In this document: one piece after another, positions 14,857 through 63,759 of the stretch
How the letters are laid out: every line of letters starts with the position of its first letter
How positions within the stretch are numbered: the stretch's first letter is position 1
From: Perna viridis
Taxonomy: Eukaryota
Length of the DNA stretch: 64,000 nucleotides
Direction: 5' to 3'
Assembly: GCA_037379345.1 (NCBI GenBank)
Contig: CM074513.1
Span: 15,376,001 to 15,440,000 of the forward strand
Program-made: the position numbers and the translations under genes
Notes under the pieces: model-generated
The model's input: only the letters and a program-made list of their open reading frames with translations
Database searches by the model: none
Told to the model about the DNA's origin: nothing

Positions 14857-17104
14857 GGTAAAAAGTTTATTTATGACTGGAAAATCTGAAATAGGTCTTC
14901 TTGTATAATGAATAAACCACAGCCTACTGGGGCATGGATAGTTCCAACCACCACATTTGTCTGAATTCATTATTTGTTTGGTTCATCTCAAGTTTCTAAT
15001 GAAAGTTAAACTTCTAATACAGAATGTAAATCTTTCCAATTCACAAACACCGACAGAAACAAAAACAAAAAACACAATAGATCCCTAAATCATAAACCTT
15101 GAATTCTTCAAAAGCACAAGTCTCCCCACGTTCCAAGGTTCAATGGGGTAGAACTCCCACAAAATTGAATGAATCATAAATTTCTAGTAATATGCGCAAC
15201 TAAATATCATATCTAAACTACCCTTGAAGTTTTATGAAATTTGTTGCAACAATTTCCGTGGATTTGCCCTCATTATAGTGTGACTGACAAATAGACAGAT
15301 AGGAGGAAAAAACTGCAAGTCCACCCACCTAAGTTGGAAAGGGGAGGGCAAATAATTTACAAACAAAAGTTTTTCAATCTGTACTGAATTATGACCTTTA
15401 AACTCGTATCCTTTCCATGCTTCAGGAGTTATGTTACAGACATTTTTTCATTCTTAATATAATACATGTATTAAGAGTTAATTCAGAAATCTGTGTTGTT
15501 TCTAAGGAAATAATAACATCTATACAGTAAAATTTAGCAGACCACCAATCTAATTGAGCTCTTCATAAGAATGAAAGACAAGATATTTGCAAGTGTGTTT
15601 ATTCTTACACAAATTCTACAAGGATATATATTTTTCCGAAATAAGTGAATTTTTAATATAGAGTGTAAAAACAACAAAATTTCATTAATTTCAATTCTCC
15701 TAACATGCATTAACACAATTTACTCCCAGTACATGCTTTGGCATTTCTATAAACTTCACACTCTACTGAAATCTATTTCAATCAGTTGGTTAATTACATG
15801 TCTTCTTTTCTAACTGGTTCTTTCAAAATATTATGAAGTCATTTCATTCTTATACCCTTTCTTTGCTTCTGATATATATTTATCTAGGCACAGCACTATT
15901 ATATCTTTGGTCATAGAATATTACACAATGTTAAGTTAAACAAACTAAAAAATAACTTATTCCACATCACAATGTCAAATTCAGATAACAACTAAAGAAG
16001 TTGGCAAACGTCTAAGATGTAACACACAAAATACACACATAATTTTCAAAATAACAAAAAATCATTGAAAATAGGAATTTAGTTTAAAGGAGTTCAAAGC
16101 GTTTAATTCCTCCAGGACTCAAAGCTTCATCTATCCATTCCTTGTACCCAGATATCTTTTTACAGTGAATCAAATCTGCTTCTTAAAAATTCAACTCGCA
16201 ATTACCAAACCAGCAAACTGCTAACAATTTGATTTCATACTATTAGTTGAATTTGGTCTCTCTTTACATCCCATACAATGATGATGTCCAGGGGATAGAG
16301 TTGGGTCTTCCACTGGTCAAATAGTATTCACATATAGAACTTCTTTAGGTAGCTGACTAGACACTTGAGAAGGAGACTGGAACTTCTAGACGACATTTCA
16401 ATAGATATTGATAGAAACAATTTAGAAGCAACTACCTAACGATAAGTAGTTAATCAGGTGACTGCCACCTATCCCCTGAGCAACATAATTGTATGAGTTA
16501 TAAATATCCATTTTTTTTTTTTACCTTTAAGGAGGATAGAGGAACAACAATGTGAAACGCCAAATACAGTTGCATGCACAATACAAAAAATACTGTAAAC
16601 CCAAGCATGAACAAAAATATATAATTATATTATTAGCAGTACATAAAAAAAAAAAAACAATAACTAAGACTATAAACTATCTGATTAGAATATACATCTG
16701 ATCTGGTAGGCAAAAATGTTTCCAGAAAAGGGAAAAAAAATAATAATCACAGTTAACAAAAATGATTGTTTTTTTTTTAAACAAGAATTAATCGATCATT
16801 ATCAAGTTCCACATTCCACTGATTTTATTTCCGCAGTGTCCGTCTCTACTTCCAGTCGAAAACTTCCCGAGCACCACCTGGTGAACAAACATGGATGGCA
16901 GCTAATGTGCTACGGTTTGGTTGAGGCTTCGTTGCACATTTTTTATTTTTACTCAGCGAGAGCAGGCTGGTTGCGTTTGTTGTCAGGTAGGCCCCCATGA
17001 TTTACAGACACTACTCCTCCTTCACCACGTCATTTTGTTGTGAATTTAGTCCATTATGTTTAGCTCCAGTGTGTACACTGCCACTGTTCGACAGTCCTTT
17101 TCAC

Positions 17105-33096
<15,992 letters not shown>

Positions 33097-52200: not shown

Positions 52201-53320
52201 AATGATGTCATTAGTTCAAATATTTAGTCATCCGACTAAGAATAATTTCCTCGTGCATCTGCAATACTTCTTCTAATTACACAATTTACATCGAATATTT
52301 GTTAATGCATCGTTCACCAGTTCATCAAACAGATTTTGTACTTTTGACGAACAAGGGAGGTTACTAGTATATAAGATAGTGGTAGTATAGATAGTATAAA
52401 GTCCCGGTACGCAGTAAAGAAAACCAAATGCAGTTGAACAATTTTGAAAAATGATTTTGTGTGAATTTTTTTCTCTCGATATCAGGACTGGCTTCATTTA
52501 ACGGAAAACAAAATACCTTTTATTTATACATTAAAGTAAATTGCTAGAACAAAGGGAACACATTAGATTAAGTCTTTGGTAAATATCCTTATAGAATAAC
52601 TAGATGATTTTTTTTTAGATCTGGCAGTTTTGTTAAGGAAGACTTTTTTACCCGGATTTCCCGAAAGAAAAAATCTGGTATTTGTATGGGGAAAATATTT
52701 AGTTCAATTGCTTTCAAATTTTAATATGTTTGGGATGACAAAATAAAGGTCATGTTCGATTTTCACAAATATCGGTTTTCGTTTCCAAGTGGTGGCCATT
52801 TTTGTAGAAGAAATGGGGAATTTGAACCTTGTCCGTTCAATAATTTAAAAAGCATTTAGTCAATAGCTCGGGAACGGGATGGTGGCATTTGTAAAGGAAT
52901 TATTGATAATAGCAAACTTTAATTAACAGCCTTAAGAAGAAATTACATCTCAATGATAAAGAATTTACAATATTACAAATAGTTTATTCAGACAGTTCAT
53001 TTATCATAAATCACCATTCTAGGTATGTAACACAAAAAAAATTATAACCATTGAGTCAACTTTGTCAACCAACTGACAGGGCAAATATATTTGTGCTGGA
53101 AAATCCGGTTTGCTGTCTCTTTGACAGCCTCGTGTTGAAATATATTCTATTGGTTTTATTTCTACGTCCACAGAGTATTTTGTTTCTATGAATTCTATAT
53201 ATTGCTTTATGTAGGCAATTTAATTAAAAGATCAAATCTGACAGAACTTCTTAGATTATTAGTAAACATTATGTTTTACATAGGCAGTAAATATGCAGCC
53301 AACTGAGTTTTAAAATATAA

Positions 53321-53452
53321 GTTCTAAGCTCCTAGGTGACTGTCTATGGTTATTTAGACAGCCAGTAGATTCAGTTAGAGTGTGAGGCGTTATAGCCTAA
53401 TCCAACAGATCTACTGACTAAGTAATTATAGACAGTTATGGGAGCTTATAAC
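53321..53452. repeat. Palindromic foldback element upstream of the kinase-Nudix ORF
   Basis: Paired arms TAAGCTCC/GGAGCTTA, ACTGTCTAT/ATAGACAGT and CAGTAGAT/ATCTACTG. Confidence 0.7.
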
Positions 53453-53971
53453 ATTTTTTGACGATATTATAGGGAAATATATCAATCTTCGTATCGAACC
53501 ATATTTCTTCGAAGTTTTGTGGGAAATCATCCGGTAATTATTAGGTAAAATCTATTTTTTTCTTAGCGTTCAAGTCAAATGTACACACTGGTTAATGGCG
53601 TGATTTAACTATGTTTGTCATGACATTCAGGTCAAATTGTTTGAAAGTGCTATATTAGTCTCATTGGTGGATGCTTTCATGGTCATATGCATTTTGTTCA
53701 TTCAAATATTTTCATTAACAGTGGATAGATGTTTATGTATCGTCTACATTTGCATATTGCTGCTTCGGTTGTTTAGACGAATGATTGTAGCCAATCCCTA
53801 CCTTATCTAATCGTTTGACACCTAGTTACGACTTTTAAGTAAAATCATCATCCGATTTCTTTTTTTTACACGTAATCTCTATTTATAACCGGAGCTTTTA
53901 AACTAGGAAGTATATTATTAAGATACTTGTATTGAGAAGCTAGAGTTATGGAGTCATTCGCTAATTTATGA

Positions 53972-56119
53972 AGTCTTCTTCTAACGTGGACCGGAAAAAC
54001 GCTTCAAGATAGTGATATTGAAAATGCCTTAAAATTACTCGATTCAGCTCGGGATTATACCAAAACATTGTCCGAGGGCGTAATCAGATACATTAACCCA
54101 CAAGACTTGGATCCTAAATGGACCCCGGTCGGATCGGGGCACTTTGGATATGTGTATTCAAGTAGGTATGGAGGATCAAGAGTTGCTATCAAAGTCTTCA
54201 AAGAAGAATCCAAATCACAATTTAGAGAGGGAAAAATTCTCTATTCATTAAGCCATGAAAATATAATCGCTTTCCGTGGAACGGGATATTTACCAGTAAA
54301 TATGTTGAAAGAATTGCAACTTGGATTAAACAGTTGTCAGCACAACACTCACTTCCAATCGGAAGAATCAGAAAACTTGTTTCTTGTTATGGAATTCGTC
54401 GATCAGAACCTATTAAGATATGTAGACAATCTGTGGAAACATGAAAGGAAAGGTTTAGGTTTTGACGTTACATGGTCCATAGGTCAACAGATCATTAGTG
54501 CCCTCCAGTACCTTCATAGTTTAGATATTGCACATCGGGACCTCAAGCCCGATAATATCCTCCTTGACGTTGGACCCAAAAGAATTGTAGTTAAACTTGC
54601 CGACTTCGGTTTAGCAACAGATCCTAATCTTATAAATACCGTTCCAACATCTGAAAAGGGAATACTATCTAAAAAATCTTCAAGTTCTTCGGCGTATGGT
54701 TCATATGCTGGAAATGTAAGATGGGGTGCCCCTGAAGTTCGAACTTTTTCATCGGACCACAAGTGTAGCTTAGAAGATTTCAAAGCAGCTGACATATACT
54801 GCTTCGGAAATGTCCTTACATTCACCATGACGGGTGAAAAACCATATGCAGAAATGTCGACTGCAGCAATAGACGACCGTATAGGGGGATTTAATGATAA
54901 TGAGAACGTGTGTGTTCCGTCATTGCCGACGTCTCTAATCGGAGTATTACTTGATGCGACAAATGATTCTATGAAAAAGGCATCGCATGAGAGGCCCAGT
55001 GCCAATAAACTGTTCAATGATTATTTTTCATCTGAGGAAAATCCATACAGACTTCAAATGAATCCAAAGGAGGAAGCAGAGTTTTTCAGCTGTGGGTTTA
55101 TGGACAAGACTGATATTTTTGTTGCCGATTCTTGCATTGACAAAGAAGCAACACAGGTCGGATTTTATGAGTCTGGTATTGAACCGACGGGATACGACCA
55201 CGAAGATTTGGTATGTGAAATTGAAGTTGAAAAAGCCCCATATCGGGACATCCCAGAAAACTGGTCACTAGAACAAACATACAAGGACAAATATGATGAA
55301 TTTCTGGAAAAGGAAAAGAACAAAGAAATAGACAATAATCCTACGGTTTCTCTAAAAGGCTTTCAATTCGCAAGACCAGGAGAAAAGGAACGTCAAAAAA
55401 TTAAATTCAAATTCAAAGAATCGAATTATGTACACCATAGAGCTATGAGGGAAGTCTGGCTTTATACTCTTACTCCGGAAGATAGATTGCAGGAAGTACC
55501 GTGCAAATCTATTGTCAATGAGTATTTCAGCAACGCATATGCTCTCCATGTTGCTGTCTTAACAAATGAAGGGGAAGGGAAACTTCAAAAATTTCTTTTT
55601 GCCCGCCGAGCTAACATACCAGGGATGCCTGCTCCAGGCAAATTTACATGTGGCGCGGTAGAAAGTGCATCAAAGCCAGATTTCAATGTGAAAGAAGATG
55701 GAAAAACATATGTTAACTTGATTAATACTGCCGCTAGAGGACTACAAGAAGAAATCGGAATAGAACTGACTAAGTCAGATCGCCATGCTATATGTTTAAC
55801 GACAGTATACCTGAAATATGATACTCATGAGTGGGGACTCTGTGGGTTTGTGAACTTAAAAGACAAAAGAATTTGTGAAAAGCATAGGCTTAGTGCTGAT
55901 TCTATTAAAGATATATTTAGTTCAGGACCAAAGGACAAATTTGAGCACCAGACACTTACCTTTGTAGACTTCGACTTAAAAACGATGGTCGAGTTTGTAT
56001 TTAATAACCACGAAAATTTTGCTAGCTCGACAAGACTCGTTGTTGTGAAAACTTTGCAGGCATTCTTTGGATGGCAAATAGTCCAACAAGAATTTGAATC
56101 GATGAGCTTCGGGAAATAA
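53972..56119 (+). CDS. Intronless Ser/Thr protein kinase fused to a C-terminal Nudix-like domain (start unresolved)
   Basis: Open frame from 53972 to 56119. Kinase motifs VGSGHFGYVY, VAIK, LVMEF, HRDLKPDNILL, KLADFG, VRWGAPE, ADIYCFG, RPSA. C-terminal region FLFARRA..PGKFTCGAVES..TAARGLQEEIGIEL is a variant of the Nudix box REUXEEXGU. AATAAA overlaps the stop codon. Confidence 0.85.
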   Translation, partial: SLLLTWTGKTLQDSDIENALKLLDSARDYTKTLSEGVIRYINPQDLDPKWTPVGSGHFGYVYSSRYGGSRVAIKVFKEESKSQFREGKILYSLSHENIIAFRGTGYLPVNMLKELQLGLNSCQHNTHFQSEESENLFLVMEFVDQNLLRYVDNLWKHERKGLGFDVTWSIGQQIISALQYLHSLDIAHRDLKPDNILLDVGPKRIVVKLADFGLATDPNLINTVPTSEKGILSKKSSSSSAYGSYAGNVRWGAPEVRTFSSDHKCSLEDFKAADIYCFGNVLTFTMTGEKPYAEMSTAAIDDRIGGFNDNENVCVPSLPTSLIGVLLDATNDSMKKASHERPSANKLFNDYFSSEENPYRLQMNPKEEAEFFSCGFMDKTDIFVADSCIDKEATQVGFYESGIEPTGYDHEDLVCEIEVEKAPYRDIPENWSLEQTYKDKYDEFLEKEKNKEIDNNPTVSLKGFQFARPGEKERQKIKFKFKESNYVHHRAMREVWLYTLTPEDRLQEVPCKSIVNEYFSNAYALHVAVLTNEGEGKLQKFLFARRANIPGMPAPGKFTCGAVESASKPDFNVKEDGKTYVNLINTAARGLQEEIGIELTKSDRHAICLTTVYLKYDTHEWGLCGFVNLKDKRICEKHRLSADSIKDIFSSGPKDKFEHQTLTFVDFDLKTMVEFVFNNHENFASSTRLVVVKTLQAFFGWQIVQQEFESMSFGK

Positions 56120-56537
56120 ATGTAATATTTCATTAAAATCTTATATGTACTGTATTTTTTAGTTTAACTAGCTAATAACTTAAGAATCCAAGATGCAATT
56201 GTTATCAAATGTAAATGAAATACTCGTAGATTGTTTCAATTTCAGCATTTTTAATTTTCAGTTATTTTTAACAGACGTCAAACAACGTTATTTAAAATAA
56301 TTTTGCAACATGGTCCATTTTCGGTATATTTTTTAAGTTTGTCTTTTTATTGAGACTACTCTATACAGCCACATTATTGTTGTCGTCAAAACTTTCTATA
56401 AACATTCATCTCAAATTCTTCTCAAATTGGTACTCAACCACCTCATACTAAATTTTTAAAAGTGGTAATTCTACTTTTCCACAATGTATCTAGCATGTCA
56501 TTAATTCCCTCACTTACTTACCGCTACAGACAGGCCT

Positions 56538-56705
56538 TTCGAAATTATCGGGCGTTATTCAAATCATACGTCGTTTGACAATCGGAAAATGTCGCGTAAA
56601 ATTATTCACTTTTTCCCGACTTTGCAAGATTCTTGCATTTTTCTTAGAGGGCTGACCGCAGTGTCTGGAATGAATTTCGAACGTCAGACGCTGTTCGGGG
56701 CTTAG
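56538..56705 (+). repeat. Dispersed repeat; a diverged second copy lies at about 59440-59605 in LPMO intron 3
   Basis: Shared collinear blocks ATTCAAA..ACGTCGTTTGA.AATCG..AATGTC..ATTCACTTTTTC..ACGTC.GA.GCTGTTC. Confidence 0.7.
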
Positions 56706-57313
56706 TTGGTTGTTGCATCTGCAAGTCAGCAAATTGATGTTTCGGCTCGTGAGTGAATCGATATACTTTCTAAACCAGATATTTCTTAAATTCGCTTTGT
56801 ATAAGTTTAAATGCATTTTGAACCATAGTAAACCGAATCGTTTACTAAACAGAAAATATTCTAAAGTCTAATAGGAGTTCGGTTAGATAGATTGCATTGT
56901 GTCGATTGAACGATTTTTTTTCAAAGGACCAGGCTATACATTGAGTCATGTCTAAACCAAAGCTCTTCGGTTTAGACAGGTTTTTGGTTTCCATTGTTCA
57001 TTTTTATACATTTGATTGAAAAAGGGACTTTAAAAAGTGTCTGGTTTGGACAGGTTATCGGATTTTCCAGGGCTCGGTTTAGATAGGTTTTACTATATTT
57101 GTTTAGATAGTTTACATGTCAACATCAATTTGTAAAGATACTACTGGTATATTAATACAGGTTTTATATTTGTTAATAATTATTTAATTAATTATGGTTT
57201 CCTAATTAGTATGCACCCCATTACTGCCCATTACATTAAATGTGTCAGTCTAGACAAACGTGTTTCTATGCAAGTTAAGCAATGTGACGTTTGCTTTGTG
57301 AAAAAGGAATATA

Positions 57314-60300
57314 ATGGCGGTTATTTCATCAGTATCATACGTGGTATTTGTTCTTTACTTTACATTACCCGTCATAAATGGCCACGGAATGATGATAGAA
57401 CCAGCCATGAGGTCGTCACTATGGAGATTTGACTACCCGGATGCTGTTCCAAATTACAATGACAATGGATTAAACTGTGGAGGATTCACGGTAAGATTTA
57501 TGCAAGAGTCACGTACGTTGTACTTTTTTTAAACTAATTTGTGTAGACAAGTCATATAACAAATTTATATACATTCCCTTTAAAGAATCGGGTTTGCCAA
57601 ATTCTTTATGATTTTAAGTTTTCTCATAATAAAGTATTAAAGTATTCCCAAATTCTTGTAGGAATCGAAAAATGTAACCGAATGAGACAAACAAATTTCG
57701 ACGTGTCATTCATATCAGGTGCCGGAAACTGAAGAGCAAAAAATTCTTTAATTTTTTTTCATTTTCTGTTTGATCATATTAAGTGCTTGGAAACTTTAGA
57801 CAACCATTTAACTTTATTTACGATTGTGTGTCTATCAAGTAGTCTTACTACTTGCTTATATCTCTGTGAATTAAAAACAACCTTTAAAGAACAAAAAATA
57901 TCTATACAGCCATCAATGCCAAATACACGTCAGTTTTTTTAAAACTAAAATACGAGGATATCAAATTTTTGTCTTGGTGACTTTTGGTCATTTACAAATT
58001 TGTGTTTTGACCTGTGAAATTTGACCCATTTCAGAACCAACATGAAAAACAGCATGGCAGATGTGGAGTATGTGGCGATCCGTACCAAGGTCCAAGAGAT
58101 AATGAATTCGGTGGAAAGTAAGTCAAGACTGTAAGATAATAATATACGGAATTTACCTCCGATATGAATAGGTGTTTTCTTACAGTTTTCAGTTTTTATA
58201 GTAAATTCTTGCCATGTTACCTTTACGAAAAGAAAAAAAAACACACGCTCACCAAAGACATGAAGTCGTGTTCATTATTATGCGTATATAATGTAAATAA
58301 ATAGTGATAAATTTCCTCGAAGACATGATAACAATATCTAGACGGTTTAGCGGAAACCAAAATGAAAAGAGTGTTGAAAAGGGGAAGAATATAATTATAG
58401 GATTAAAAAAAGAAGAATATAATTGTGGGGTAAAAAAAGAAGAATATAATAATGGGGTAAAAAAGGAAGAATGTAATGATGGTGAAGAGTCATCGAAATG
58501 GAAGGGCACGATTTTCAAAAAAAATAATTTCAATAAATAAACTATTTTCCTCCAAATTGGAATGGGATACATTCAGAGGCAACATGGGTACCGTCCCTAT
58601 TCATTTTAGGTTTGACAGAACATGAACTAAAAGCATTAAATGAAACACATTCCAAAAGGAAACAAAAAATGCACATCCATCAATGAAAGGCAAAGTTGTT
58701 ATAAATCACTATAAACATACAATATTTTTGCTGGAAAGTGACATCAAAATTGCCAGACATTATAAGCATCATTTATTTTCTAAGGAGAAAATAACGAGCC
58801 TTCGATTGCATGTGAAATCAAATCAATGGAAGGTTCCGTTTCAGAAAATTTAAAATTGGGGATGCCAGGCTACTATTTGCTAATTCTTTTAACAAAATTT
58901 TTGCCCACAATTGACAATTCTTAAAGGGGGAGAGTCTAACCCCCGGTTCTCTATCCCTAGATCCACCAATGAAAGAAAAATTGCTCTGTTGTACTTATAT
59001 ATTTAATATTCCTTTACGAAATTATAAACGGGGTCTGTTTTCCTTCCAGATATGCAAAAGGAATTATTGCTAAAACGTATAAAGCTGGACAATATATAAC
59101 CGTTGTATCGGATATAACAGCCAACCATGGTGGATTTATTGAAGTTAGGCTATGCCCACACAATAATGCACGAGCACCAGTTTCCCAGAGGTGCTTAAAC
59201 CAAAATTTATTGCAAATTAAAGGCCATGGAACCAGATACCTATTAACATCCAGTAAAAAGAGAAATTTCAGAATACGTCACACAGTTAAGCTTCCAGATT
59301 ACATCACCTGTAGACAATGTGTTCTGCAGTGGTTTTGGAAGGCCGGTTAGTAAGTATGCGACTTTGACTTTTTGTTCTAATATTGCTTCAGATTTCACGC
59401 GACGACAGACGTTTGATTTCTTGCTTACTGCAGTCATACCTTTTAAAATTCTCAGACATAATTCAAACCAAACGTCGTTTGAAAATCGAATAATGTCTCT
59501 TAAAGTCATTCACTTTTTCTTGACTGCAGTAGTCTTACATTTTTATTAAAGGGGTGGCTCCAGCGTCTATTATGAGTTTTGGACGTCGGATGCTGTTCTG
59601 AGCTTGATATTTCTGATCAATTAATTATCGACTTTTTTGTTTTGTTTTTGTTTTGTTTGTTTATTTTTGTTTGTTTGTTTGCTTGTTTTGTTATTGAGAT
59701 TTATAACTAAATGGTTAAAAATCCGTTAGACAGTGTGTGACGGTATGAAACTGAAATAAAATTAGAGAAGTTTAACTTTTTTATTGTCACGTTGTATTTC
59801 CTTAAATTGCTTGATTGAATCTCGTTTACTTCAAATTTTCAAATTAATAAGTGTGCCGTGGTTGCCCAGTATAACACCACGTTACTATTACAAGTATTCG
59901 TAAACGAAAGTACTAAAACATATTTATTACCAAGCCTGAAATACGTGTTTCAAGTAGTAACCTCTCATCCTCATCATTAAAATAAAAAAACAAATGAAGA
60001 AGATCTGAATAAAAAAATGTGTACAAGAAGTTCTCAAAACTATCGCTATTGATAGTCAAATCAACCATAAAAATAACGAACCAAACAAGATGCCTGCTTC
60101 CAGATTTCTAACAAGTAAAAATTGACATAACTAACGATCATATAAAAAAACGAGATAAAAATCAAAGACAATCGTCAAATAGATCTAATTAATATCACTT
60201 GCAAAATTTAGTAAAAGACGGAAAAAAATTAAAATACTAGAAATGATACTGATTTGGTAAAAGGAAACCCTGGTTGGTAGATGGTAACTTTACATGCTAA

Positions 60301-63300
60301 TAATATATCACGATGTTTATATCTTGATTTGTAGGTCAGCATAATGGGATAAATCCTGTTACAAATAAAGAATGCATAGGATGTGGAAGACAGGAAGAGT
60401 TTATAAACTGTGCTGATATTGCCATTACTGATGAGTTTGGACAGTTTCCAACTCCAGCACCTCAATTTCAGGCAACAACGCCAATGCCAATGTATGACCA
60501 GTTTCTATTTCAACAGAATGGAATGTATCCGGATTATTTCGATGAATTCAGTCCTTTCTATGGTGATCCGTCATTTTTAAACCCGTTCAACAGCCCATTT
60601 TTAAACAGCGAATTTGCAAGCTTGAATCAACAATTTGGCAATAACGAAATGCAAAATCCTAGCATGCATACCAATAATGGAATGCAGAACCGTGGTATGA
60701 AAACTAATATTGGAATGCAAAATCCATCAATGCACGCTAATAAAGGAATGCTGCAGAATACAGGTTTGCCTAGTAATAAAAGAATACAGAATCAAGGAAT
60801 GCATTCTAATAATCACATGCAAAATCCAAGTATGCTAGCCAACAACAAAATGCAAAATCCCTCAATGTTTGTCAATAACAGAATGCAAAATTCGGGAATG
60901 ATTGCAAATAACGGAATACAAACTCAAAATATATATGCCAATAATGGAATGCAACCCACAGGCATGCACAATATCTACCTGAAAGACCCATTAAGAGGAC
61001 TACCTCAACAAACGCCACAAAACGTGGGACCACGAGCAATGGTCCCAACAACTGCGGTAACCAGATCTCGTCCTTACACTCAAACTAGATATCAAACCAT
61101 TAACACCCGACCTACAGTAGCTAATAGTAACAGACGACCCTTAATACCAAGAAATAGAAGACCGGTTGTACCACGAACCAACAGTCCCCAAGTCAAACTA
61201 AATACAAACAAACAAATGCGTCCAGCTCTTGCTGATAACCAAAGAGTACCACCACAACCAAGCAGTAGTATTTCATATTCAACAAGAGCGCCAACGATTG
61301 GTCCTCAAGTTGTACAAAGAAAACTTATAACACAGCAGGAACCTAATTTTGGAGATTCTGATGTGGCTGAGGCTTTCGAGGATCTAATGGACAACGAAGG
61401 AGAGTTTTTAAAAAATATGGATTTTTGGAATGATTTTAACAAATTATTAAACATGTCTTCTCCAGAAACTAAACAAGCCCTTTATGAAATTGCAGATGAT
61501 GCGGAAAATTTGCAAGAATTTCATCGAAATGTCAGGCTTATGATGCAGATGATGGGTGACGGAGTAGACCCAAAAACTGCCGTGGAATTAGGAATTGACT
61601 CTGATGATTCTCTGGATATCAATTGGCTTTTAAAAGAAGCTAAAGAGCAAGGTTTGGACAGTGACGAATTGAGTCTTTTAGAGGACGCAAAAGATAAACG
61701 TGATAGTGGTGAAAGTGATAATAACGAAGAGAATGAAGAGAGTAGCACACAAGAAAAGCAAAAAATGCAATATTATGGCAACAATGATGAAAATCGATTG
61801 TTAGATGATTCGGGTATTGAAAGTGATGATAGTGCTCAATCCGATGGTAAAAACGATAAATTCGATTACAGTGATAGGGAAAGTTTTGAAAAGGAATATA
61901 ATTCTTTATCATCCGAAGAAGATCACTCTGAAATGGCAAACAACGATTTAAACAAGGATTATGATAGTGACGAGGATAGCTACCAACACAATGAGATCAA
62001 ACTTAATGTAAAAACCAGCAGCTCTAGTTTGAACTGGGGTTATAACCAACCAACTCCAACACCATCATCTGTTAGAACAAACCCATGGAACGAGAATTCT
62101 TTATACCGATCTAACGTTGACTACGATGACAAAGACGTAAATGTAGAGGGCGACTCTGTCAATGCATTTAAAAAGATTGTTCCAGGTTTCACAGAGAAAA
62201 CACCGTCCTATAATTACATGGAAATACAAAATAATAAATTACAGGTGAATACGTTTGGGAGCGATACTAATGACTATTCAGAATCGGAAAACGAAAAGGA
62301 AAATGAAGGAGATGATGTCGGGGATGGTGATGAAAACAAGAAGTGGAATAAATTTTCAGAGGAAAAGGAAGATAAACAACAGAATGAGCATTGGTCGGCG
62401 GGAGCTGTACCCGATATTTACGCAGGCACAGTCATTGTAACTTCTCGCAAGAGAGGTTCAAGGATAGACAATACTGGAAAGGAAAAAGAAAATGAAAATG
62501 AAATAGAAAATGAGGATAAAATATCTTCAAAGAATTCAAAACTTCTTGGAGTTAAAAAGGGCAAGAAAGTTTCGTCGTGGGGCGGTCAGGAAGGTAATTC
62601 TGCTGAAAAAGCCGAAAATGAAGTTGTAGAAAAATCCCCGGATGCAGAAAATGAAAAACCGGAAAAAGGTAGCTTGGATAAACAAAAAGAAGACGAAAAC
62701 TCAAACAACCTTATAGGTTTAACTACAATTTATCAGGAAGAAGGTGATGGAAAATCGGCAAATGAAGAAAATGAACTTAAACAATCTGTGAAAGAAAATA
62801 GCAAGAAATCTCTTAAAGAGGAAAATGAAATGAAAACGCTGAAGGAAGAAAATGAAATTAAATCACACAAAGAAGAAAATGAAATGAAATCACCGGAGGA
62901 AGAAATAAAAATAAAAACACCAAAGGAGGAAAACTCATTTGGTGAAATGAAAGTAGATTTGGCTGGCCATATTGGGGACAGTAATATAGTCAAACCAGAA
63001 GAAGACATTGGTGAATCAAAGAGTAACTCAGTTTTTATGAATAATCAGCAGTTTAGAAATGTTGACGATCCTAGCGAACCTGTTAAAAGTGCATCGAATT
63101 CCATGGGAGTAAAGCCGTTTATTGGTGATTCGCCAAAATTTATGGGAAATATGAAACAAGCACAAATGTTTTATCCTACGGCCTTTCCAGCTATGAACTC
63201 GTTTACGACCAGAGGTTCTCCTTTTATGATGATAGATAACAGGTATTCTACCCAGTATCAACAAACGCCCAATCAACAACATACTACAATGTCCGGTTTC

Positions 63301-63759
63301 CGAAAGCGTGTTCAGAACAGAATATCTAAGTCAATGGGTCATAATATTGATGATCCTGTCATGACACAACCTTTGACTCTCAAAGTCAAAATAAAATCTA
63401 CTAGAAAATCTAAAAAAGGATTATCTCCTAATCTTTCCAAACTGGTACTCAAGATGTTTATGAATAGTAAATCGGGTGCACCTCCTTGCGATGGAAATCT
63501 AAAATCGGTCTGCCGCCCAGTAAAGATGTGGAGCAAATATCAACAGGTGGCCGATTGGTGTACATCACTTTGTCCATATGGTCAGTGTCCGTCCGCTGTA
63601 TGCAAGTGTCAATGCACAGGCAGTCCCATGGGATCAGTAGGGCAGAAAAAATGTCGTGCAACTAATACTTACAAACAAAATTCGGGTGAACTCGATCAAT
63701 GGTGTCAAAAGACTTGCAGCAAAGGTGATTGCCCAGCATTGCTCTGTGTATGTTCATGA
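57314..63759 (+). CDS. Secreted AA15-type lytic polysaccharide monooxygenase with a giant low-complexity linker and two C-terminal Cys modules, about 1326 aa
   Basis: Exons 57314-57490, 58035-58117, 59050-59345, 60335-63759; total 3981 nt in frame. A 23-aa signal peptide precedes H-GMMIEPAMRSSLWR, then NDNGLNCGG, GRCGVCGD, TANHGG (second His), CRQCVLQWFW and CIGCGRQEEFINCADIAI. Confidence 0.92.
58384..58485 (+). repeat. Minisatellite of about 27 bp, 3-4 copies, in LPMO intron 2
   Basis: Units approximating GAAGAATATAATNNTGGGGTAAAAAAA. Confidence 0.7.

Follow-up and report, generated by a model that had tools for sequence, protein, structure and literature searches.

Introduction

Human NUDT22 is an outlier of the human Nudix family that lacks a conventional NUDIX box (PMC5688067). 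It cleaves UDP-glucose to UMP and glucose-1-phosphate and thereby feeds pyrimidine salvage (PMC10101856). Here we describe a gene related in part to NUDT22 in a 64,000-nucleotide stretch of the genome of the mussel Perna viridis (GenBank assembly GCA_037379345.1, contig CM074513.1, positions 15,376,001 to 15,440,000 of the forward strand; hereafter the window, in whose numbering coordinates are given). The locus is an expressed single-exon gene on the + strand for a predicted 723-amino-acid cytosolic signalling enzyme, in which an N-terminal helical hairpin and a Ser/Thr protein kinase precede a NUDT22-homologous module. Human NUDT22, a UDP-glucose/UDP-galactose pyrophosphatase (PDB 5lf9, 5lor, 5lou), has the same two-domain fold as that predicted for the mussel module, a beta-rich N-terminal domain followed by a Nudix domain, and the Nudix box is non-canonical in both (PMC5688067). 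The human protein is a stand-alone enzyme of 303 amino acids without a kinase, whereas the mussel module is fused to one.

Nudix modules also act as ligand sensors for a fused output, as in NrtR and AraR, where the partner is a helix-turn-helix (HTH) domain, and in the NUDT9-homology domain of TRPM2; many such sensor domains have lost catalysis. The mussel protein likewise places a Nudix fold beside an output domain, and one bacterial relative (P0146) is itself an HTH fusion. However, the Nudix parts of NrtR, AraR and TRPM2 are single-domain and resemble ADP-ribose pyrophosphatases, whereas the mussel module is NUDT22-like, has conserved catalytic glutamates and has a kinase as its output. In RNase L and IRE1 the kinase-like domain controls the RNase, and these proteins share with the mussel protein the order of a kinase-like domain and a C-terminal enzyme; a stress or antiviral role is plausible for the mussel protein too. 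Their effector is the KEN RNase, whereas the mussel protein has a Nudix domain and neither ankyrin repeats nor a lumenal sensor. Membership of this group was rejected since there is no KEN domain, and RNase L and IRE1 are absent among the 60 best solved kinases listed for the mussel kinase.

Among prokaryotic conflict systems, the two-gene EACC1-caspase system of multicellular bacteria (Kaur, Burroughs, Iyer and Aravind, 2020; PMC7159879) has a variable C-terminal domain which is interpreted as the deployed effector. A term search of that paper, on NTP-dependent conflict systems, gave a single generic mention of Nudix, and NUDT22 was not searched for there; the survey of NAD-ADPr systems from the Aravind group does not mention NUDT22. 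An earlier reading of the window from its letters alone (the original prediction) knew of no characterised animal kinase-Nudix protein, and our literature search likewise found none, nor any account of a kinase-NUDT22-like family, of TIR- or caspase-NUDT22-like proteins, or of the loci annotated here.

Results

The C-terminal module is predicted to have the complete NUDT22 fold

An AlphaFold2 (AF2) model of the 359-residue C-terminal module, built from 37 sequences, had a predicted local distance difference test (pLDDT) score of 90.2 and a predicted template modelling (pTM) score of 0.89. The top Foldseek match of this model was human NUDT22, aligned over the whole chain (E 1.8e-12, target TM-score (TMt) 0.72, 338 columns), with all other Nudix proteins ranked far below it. 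VIA-align placed NUDT22 at Z 22.9, with 275/282 residues aligned at a root mean square deviation of 3.5 Å, and the next entry at Z 13.3. The top 50 VIA-align entries and the Foldseek matches with E <=1e-3 were Nudix-fold proteins, NrtR and AraR among them. Nudix-only structures (NrtR, NUDT16, IPP isomerase, and ADP-ribose and NDP-sugar hydrolases) aligned to model residues ~165-345 with Z 10-13, and a viral structure library returned generic Nudix matches only.

The relationship to NUDT22 can also be detected, at low identity (~12%), from sequence. A profile built from 32 sequences of animals and bacteria matched NUDT22 residues 16-151 at E 1.3e-6, a match confined to the N-terminal domain and the first strand of the Nudix domain. 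The second half of the module scored 12.3 bits against Pfam NUDIX, below the cut-off of 21.1, and NCBIfam and PADLOC gave nothing for the C-terminal half of the protein. Taken as modelled, the module is a whole two-domain NUDT22-type structure. Its N-terminal subdomain covers amino acids ~378-524 (55079..55519, + strand), where the AF2 model aligns from NUDT22 residue 1, and its Nudix-fold subdomain covers amino acids ~529-709 (55532..56074, + strand), as placed by structure alignment and the weak Pfam match.

The divergent Nudix box lies at 55637..55762 (+ strand) and consists of GKFTCGAVE (residues 564-572), a 24-residue insert and RGLQEEIGI (597-605), with FARRA (551-555) upstream. The canonical pattern GX5EX7REUXEEXGU is not matched, as 24 residues instead of seven separate the Glu of GAVE from the Arg of RGLQEE and the RE pair is replaced by RG, and it is mainly by these two changes that the mussel R-G-L-x-E-E-x-G-I box departs from the canonical one. 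In animal and bacterial members alike, E572, R597, E601 and E602 (domain numbering: E208, R233, E237 and E238) either do not vary or are conserved to at least 90%. Further downstream is a KDKFEH motif (55931..55948, + strand; D663 and E666, or D299 and E302 of the domain); throughout alignment A2 its Asp does not vary and its Glu is conserved to at least 90%. The motif aligns, non-significantly, with the GPEAHE stretch of NUDT22, and probably belongs to the active-site cleft. Since the upstream Glu, the Arg, both paired Glu residues, D299 and E302 are invariant or nearly so, and all six are conserved from bacteria to animals, the module looks from its sequence like an active hydrolase of nucleoside diphosphates linked to another moiety (NDP-X) and not a dead scaffold. 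A pseudo-enzyme of the TIRR/NUDT16L1 kind was rejected in view of the conserved catalytic glutamates. The Nudix domain that the original prediction had placed in this half of the protein is thus found when the structure is modelled, more specifically as a NUDT22-like domain, and the Gly-for-Glu substitution, the long insertion and the retained EE pair which it had read in the box are all present.

The kinase is complete and of an orphan lineage by sequence

In the full-length AF2 model the protein begins with a helical hairpin (amino acids 1-42; 53948..54073, + strand) formed by helices at residues 2-12 and 21-42, for which there is no Pfam match. It is followed by a Ser/Thr protein kinase domain (amino acids ~60-357; 54125..55018, + strand; Pfam Pkinase E 2e-29). 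All the motifs listed for the kinase in the original prediction were located: GSGHFG at residues 62-67, VAIK at 79-82, HRDLKPDN at 196-203, DFG at 219-221 and APE at 261-263. Conservation across 33 animal sequences is at least 90% at G62, G64, K82, E94, H196, D198, K200, N203, D219-G221 and P262-E263. The catalytic set is complete, including the alphaC Glu, and the HRD loop has the Lys of the Ser/Thr type, so that the kinase looks catalytically competent. It has a long activation loop, rich in Ser, which the full-length model gives with low confidence. The nearest solved kinases, PKR, RAF and DLK, matched only at E ~1e-15 to 1e-13; no solved kinase is close, no named kinase subfamily could be assigned, and on sequence comparison the kinase is an orphan lineage.

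The kinase is joined to the C-terminal module by a junction motif, NPY...AEFFSCGF (55040..55099, + strand), in which N365, P366, F380, C382, G383 and F384 are near-invariant in alignment A4. Residues 370-376 form a flexible linker of low pLDDT in the full-length model, whose pTM is 0.53.

The gene is a transcribed single exon whose codon 8 differs between data sets

The complete coding sequence (CDS) runs from an ATG at 53948 to the stop at 56119 on the + strand, 723 codons plus the stop in one exon. The frame from 53972 to 56119 that had first been noticed is indeed open; its true start is the ATG at 53948, and an in-frame TGA at 53969-53971 had been overlooked. A Logan contig of 2555 bp (L001) aligns colinearly to window 53689-56243 (5 mismatches, 0 gaps) and codes for an intact 723-residue database protein (P0001). 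Compared with the window frame, P0001 has Arg at codon 8 and only two substitutions besides, W163R and A430V.

The TGA (53969..53971, + strand) is codon 8, so that translation of the window from the ATG at 53948 reads M-E-S-F-A-N-L-stop. Contigs from two other runs, X1 and X4, have A at 53969 and hence AGA (Arg); L001 may come from the same data set as X4. Either the sequenced individual carries a nonsense allele, which may be a null segregating in the species, or the assembly has one wrong base at this codon. A contig from run X7, which is probably a transcript, begins at 53970, one base past the variant position, as expected if a variant bubble interrupted the assembly there.

Evidence for transcription came from raw stranded RNA-seq reads, which covered the CDS alone, at 0.4-5x, with zero depth on both flanks. 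Every stranded read pair at the CDS has its first mate on the minus strand, the usual sign of + strand RNA, and in the public runs compared with the locus no read joints fell within the CDS. The probable transcript contig of X7 has a word depth of 49 across 53970-56261. As sense reads lie over the CDS and no joints occur inside it, we conclude that the gene is a transcribed single exon, expressed from the sense strand. An AATAAA overlapping the stop codon (56115..56120, + strand) is a possible polyadenylation signal by its motif, although its use is uncertain because the X7 contig extends beyond it, to 56261.

The kinase-module fusion is conserved across animals

A search with the C-terminal region returned 72 proteins, with 43-71% identity and, in nearly all of them, the same kinase plus module architecture; the few shorter proteins without a kinase call look like partial models. 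Named members come from bivalves, Haliotis, a chiton, Lingula, amphioxus, tunicates, a hemichordate, many cnidarians and the sponge Oscarella, and are annotated as 'uncharacterized' or misnamed through their kinase similarity. Although taxon names exist for a minority of the matches only, no named match came from a vertebrate, arthropod, nematode or echinoderm.

In the Perna viridis genome the gene occurs twice, on contigs C3 and C8, with 72% identity and uninterrupted frames in both. The second copy (G000:C8:4934219-4935283; L007 403-2574), on a separate contig of chromosome scale, is intact and intronless, encodes 723 amino acids and is 72% identical in the C-terminal module. In the tree both Perna viridis copies pair together, as do both tandem copies of M. 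galloprovincialis, a pattern that suggests independent duplications or gene conversion. The gene is also a single exon in M. galloprovincialis, where it has the tandem paralogue, and in C. virginica. In contrast, the gene takes up 8-12.5 kb in Nematostella, amphioxus and Haliotis, where it is divided into 9 to ~13 coding blocks, and several intron positions, read from tblastn blocks with an accuracy of ~5 residues, roughly coincide across phyla in the kinase and Nudix halves alike. Because these multi-exon orthologues roughly share introns in both halves, the comparison of gene structures indicates that kinase and module were already joined before cnidarians and bilaterians diverged, and that the lack of introns in mussels and oysters is a derived condition which arose in the bivalve lineage.

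The intronless CDS of bivalves, set against outgroup orthologues with introns, is the arrangement of a retrogene, and fits retroposition, as originally proposed, or wholesale intron loss. No repeats marking a retrogene were found downstream of the stop at 56200-56800, the only flank inspected, and the second copy is likewise uninterrupted; such marks would be erased, as the event predates the mussel-oyster split. Between copies and species the proportion of synonymous differences (pS) was 0.79-0.96 and that of nonsynonymous differences (pN) 0.17-0.45, with the Nudix half the more constrained. These values are given in place of dN/dS because synonymous sites are saturated. The gene is under strong purifying selection.

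Several expectations of the original prediction can be set against these results. Its description of the gene as intronless holds for mussels and the oyster and fails as the original state. The protein is undescribed in so far as no publication on it was found, yet it is no bivalve novelty, its architecture being widely conserved in animals. Capture of a bacterial Nudix effector, if meant as a recent event, was rejected on the basis of the introns shared by both halves and the single metazoan clade, since the fusion is older than the cnidarian-bilaterian split. A dispensable, expanded immune repertoire of bivalves does not agree with the deep conservation and the strong purifying selection, and a bivalve-specific expansion was rejected in view of the presence of only two copies in the genome. 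Lack of expression with dN/dS near 1 had been named as the outcome that would speak against a functional gene; instead the gene is transcribed, with the pN given above against saturated pS.

One Branchiostoma belcheri protein (P0045, 1015 amino acids) has a Death domain (E 2.6e-9) ahead of the kinase-NUDT22-like body. As it lacks the kinase N-lobe, it may be a chimeric mis-prediction and we treat the link as doubtful; if real, it would connect the family to death-fold signalling.

Outside animals the module is joined to other output domains

A scan with the module covered 1.84 billion representatives and gave 137 matches. Kinase fusions outside animals were found in a protein of the jakobid Andalucia godoyi and in metagenomic proteins with eukaryote-like low-complexity regions, which we infer to be eukaryotic in origin. 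Most bacterial members are ~370 residues long, with basic residues behind a hydrophobic helix at the N-terminus (for example WP_405222218 of Lentisalinibacter), and are nearer in sequence to the mussel module (25-32% identity) than NUDT22 is (~12%). Phylum hints from the Atlas for the bacterial members are Actinomycetota, Chloroflexota and Pseudomonadota. Other bacterial members carry the module fused to TIR (P0100, P0121 and P0135, with L018 a form that has TIR and a transmembrane (TM) helix), to caspase (P0174 and P0196, the latter being Thermomonospora WP_286991012) or, in P0146, to HTH. In a quick LG+G4, midpoint-rooted tree of the domain, in which the long branches of Andalucia and P0164 should not be relied on, all kinase fusions fall into one group and the animals are a single clade within it (SH-aLRT 99). 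The bacterial forms are placed on the opposite side of the tree, and TIR was fused at least twice.

The original prediction had considered capture of a bacterial-type Nudix effector; bacterial relatives do exist, and several of them stand in defence contexts (restriction, toxin-antitoxin, EACC1). One TIR fusion adjoins Type ISP restriction, a FokI-domain protein, DUF3800, UvrD and IS66. A second is followed by an alpha/beta-hydrolase-like open reading frame (ORF) and then by a separate TIR_2 gene, with BrnTA near. One TM form adjoins an MmeI-type enzyme, HicA and an ISL3 fragment, and the TIR-TM form adjoins HIRAN and HipA genes. An EACC1 gene (E 7.8e-21) lies directly upstream of the Thermomonospora caspase fusion (P0196/P0206) and overlaps it, and one further bacterial locus has housekeeping neighbours only. 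PADLOC gave no matches beyond the TIR part of the fusions. No conserved operon partner was found at the bacterial loci examined, and two ORFs of no recognised kind that adjoin TIR fusions are unrelated to each other. The module was present in 3/401 sampled genomes of one phylum, and in bacteria it is a rare, mobile-looking unit that has repeatedly been joined to classic conflict-system output domains.

These forms can be compared with described systems. The Thermomonospora pair fits the EACC1-caspase system, with the module at the C-terminus of the caspase protein and the EACC1 gene 5' of it, although this is one bacterial branch only and the animal protein has a kinase and neither caspase nor EACC1 partner. 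The bacterial relatives also share the grammar of Thoeris ThsA-type effectors (TM-Macro, SIR2-SLOG) and of the TIR- and TM-sensor fusions of CBASS, in that an N-terminal TM helix or TIR precedes a predicted C-terminal nucleotide-binding domain, and the locus of one of them has the separate TIR_2 gene two genes away. Unlike Thoeris and CBASS, they have no conserved signal-producing partner gene at the loci examined.

At three unrelated bacterial loci the next gene downstream of the NUDT22-like gene is of the dienelactone-hydrolase or alpha/beta-hydrolase type (L003 8562-9494, L010 10506-11393 and, by a weak match, L009 7744-8592), which may be chance or a loose association.

DNA flanking the mussel gene

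Just downstream of the gene is a 299-bp presence/absence polymorphism (window 56262-56560, with ends TT..TC). The stretch is skipped in contigs of X1 and of X7, which is probably RNA. As the skip (56261-56561) is also present in X1, a run of a kind not on record and DNA-like in appearance, we read it as a probable indel rather than an intron. The 299-bp stretch showed no terminal repeats. Very high-copy repeats flank the gene upstream (53268-53803) and downstream (56484-56751), with summed word depths of ~800-1100 and ~17000-18000, respectively, against ~100 for single-copy sequence; they are probably fragments of interspersed mobile elements. Further downstream, a composition profile of window 57314-63759 shows raised GC and strong AT skew.

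Discussion

The fusion partners of the module in different lineages bear on the direction in which a signal might pass through the mussel protein. We tentatively favour, at close to but short of an even chance, a ligand-gated kinase of stress or innate-immune signalling, in which the NUDT22-like module would be both binding site and hydrolase for an NDP-X compound, and the filling of its cleft would control the output domain at the N-terminus. The compound would be a metabolite or signal that is UDP-sugar-like or ADP-ribose-like; the output would be the kinase in animals and TIR, caspase, a membrane helix or HTH in bacteria; and hydrolysis of the bound ligand would reset the switch. Transfer from ligand to output is favoured because the variable partners (TM helix, TIR, caspase, kinase and HTH) are all outputs and none is a typical sensor, and because Nudix modules act as sensors in NrtR, AraR and TRPM2.

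A number of points weigh against a ligand-gated kinase. A plain hydrolase fits the conserved catalytic residues at least as well as a sensor does, and fast-evolving immune genes do not typically show so few copies or such strong constraint as are seen in animals. Among the genes beside the bacterial homologues examined, no enzyme that would make a signal recurs consistently. The full-length AF2 model, with its low pTM of 0.53 and flexible linker, predicts no fixed interface between kinase and Nudix domains and is no guide to the direction of coupling, and the amphioxus P0045 model, with its possible death-fold link, is without the kinase N-lobe. In the published EACC1-caspase system, the C-terminal variable position that the module would occupy is read as that of an effector and not a sensor (PMC7159879).

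This last point leads to the reverse arrangement, the kinase-gated hydrolase of the original prediction, in which the module would be the output and would destroy a nucleotide-linked metabolite (UDP-sugar, ADP-ribose or NAD-derived) once switched on by autophosphorylation or nucleotide-driven dimerisation, as in RNase L and IRE1. We regard it as somewhat unlikely. All lineages keep the catalytic Glu pair and the residues of the cleft, the fold of NUDT22 is that of an active enzyme (PMC10101856), and a protein with TIR and Nudix could be a two-step degrader of NAD to AMP. The Thermomonospora homologue, moreover, matches exactly the EACC1-caspase arrangement whose C-terminal variable domain is read as effector (PMC7159879). 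Against this, the bacterial partners (TM helix, TIR, caspase and HTH) are themselves outputs, so that such proteins would have two effectors and no sensor, and the full-length model, at its low pTM, predicts no kinase-Nudix interface for this arrangement either. The bacterial domain grammar fits a ligand-gated kinase at least as well as a kinase-gated hydrolase.

A role without any part in immunity, namely a housekeeping nucleotide-sugar or pyrimidine-salvage hydrolase with a regulatory kinase, the defence-island neighbours being coincidental, seems to us decidedly unlikely. It would agree with the strong purifying selection, slow evolution and 1-2 copies per genome, with the two bacterial loci that are bordered on at least one side by housekeeping genes only, and with the service of NUDT22 itself in UDP-glucose hydrolysis and pyrimidine salvage (PMC10101856). 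Yet the want of named vertebrate, arthropod, nematode and echinoderm matches would be unusual for core metabolism, identity to NUDT22 is only ~12%, and the bacterial relatives are rare (3/401 genomes) and repeatedly fused to TIR or caspase or placed beside restriction-modification, toxin-antitoxin or EACC1 genes.

Least probable of all is that the window copy is a dead or dying allele made null by the codon-8 TGA: the next in-frame ATG is codon 117, from which the Gly loop and the VAIK lysine would be lost, and the start of the X7 contig at 53970 fits a variant bubble, but the remaining 715-codon frame is intact with only two further amino-acid differences from P0001, codon 8 is AGA in the X1 and X4 contigs and Arg in L001 (possibly X4 data), the gene is transcribed, and 53969 may be a single-base assembly error.

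Returning to the ligand-gated kinase, a narrower form of it can be drawn, in which the module is a receptor with built-in turnover for an immune messenger of the ADP-ribose or NDP-sugar type, inherited from or shared with prokaryotic conflict systems; it would gate a kinase in animals and certain protists, with later loss from vertebrates and ecdysozoans. Put so specifically the proposal is speculative, and we consider it unlikely to hold in all its parts. An ancient immune or stress-signalling device is nonetheless suggested by bacterial cousins that are fused to TIR, caspase and membrane anchors, some of them beside defence genes.

What is new here is a deeply conserved, uncharacterised architecture and an unrecognised bacterial radiation; the component domains were already known. 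The family has no Pfam family or name, no publication on it was found, and the lack of named matches in the commonly studied model species would account for its having been overlooked. Experimentally tractable animals do have it, among them Nematostella, Ciona, oysters and amphioxus. Read most conservatively, the results add a new architecture, together with a bacterial radiation, to the NUDT22 branch of the Nudix superfamily. A number of central components of animal innate immunity, cGAS-STING, TIR, gasdermins and viperin among them, are shared with bacterial anti-phage systems, and this family shows the same kind of sharing: one module stands on a kinase in animals and protists, and rare bacterial genes, several of which adjoin defence genes, carry it on TIR, caspase or a membrane helix. 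Should a nucleotide signal bind to the module, the protein would link a small molecule directly to a kinase and would suggest an ancestral role for human NUDT22, and, were it the receptor proposed above, it would define a previously unrecognised small-molecule-to-kinase pathway of innate immunity extending from sponges to amphioxus.

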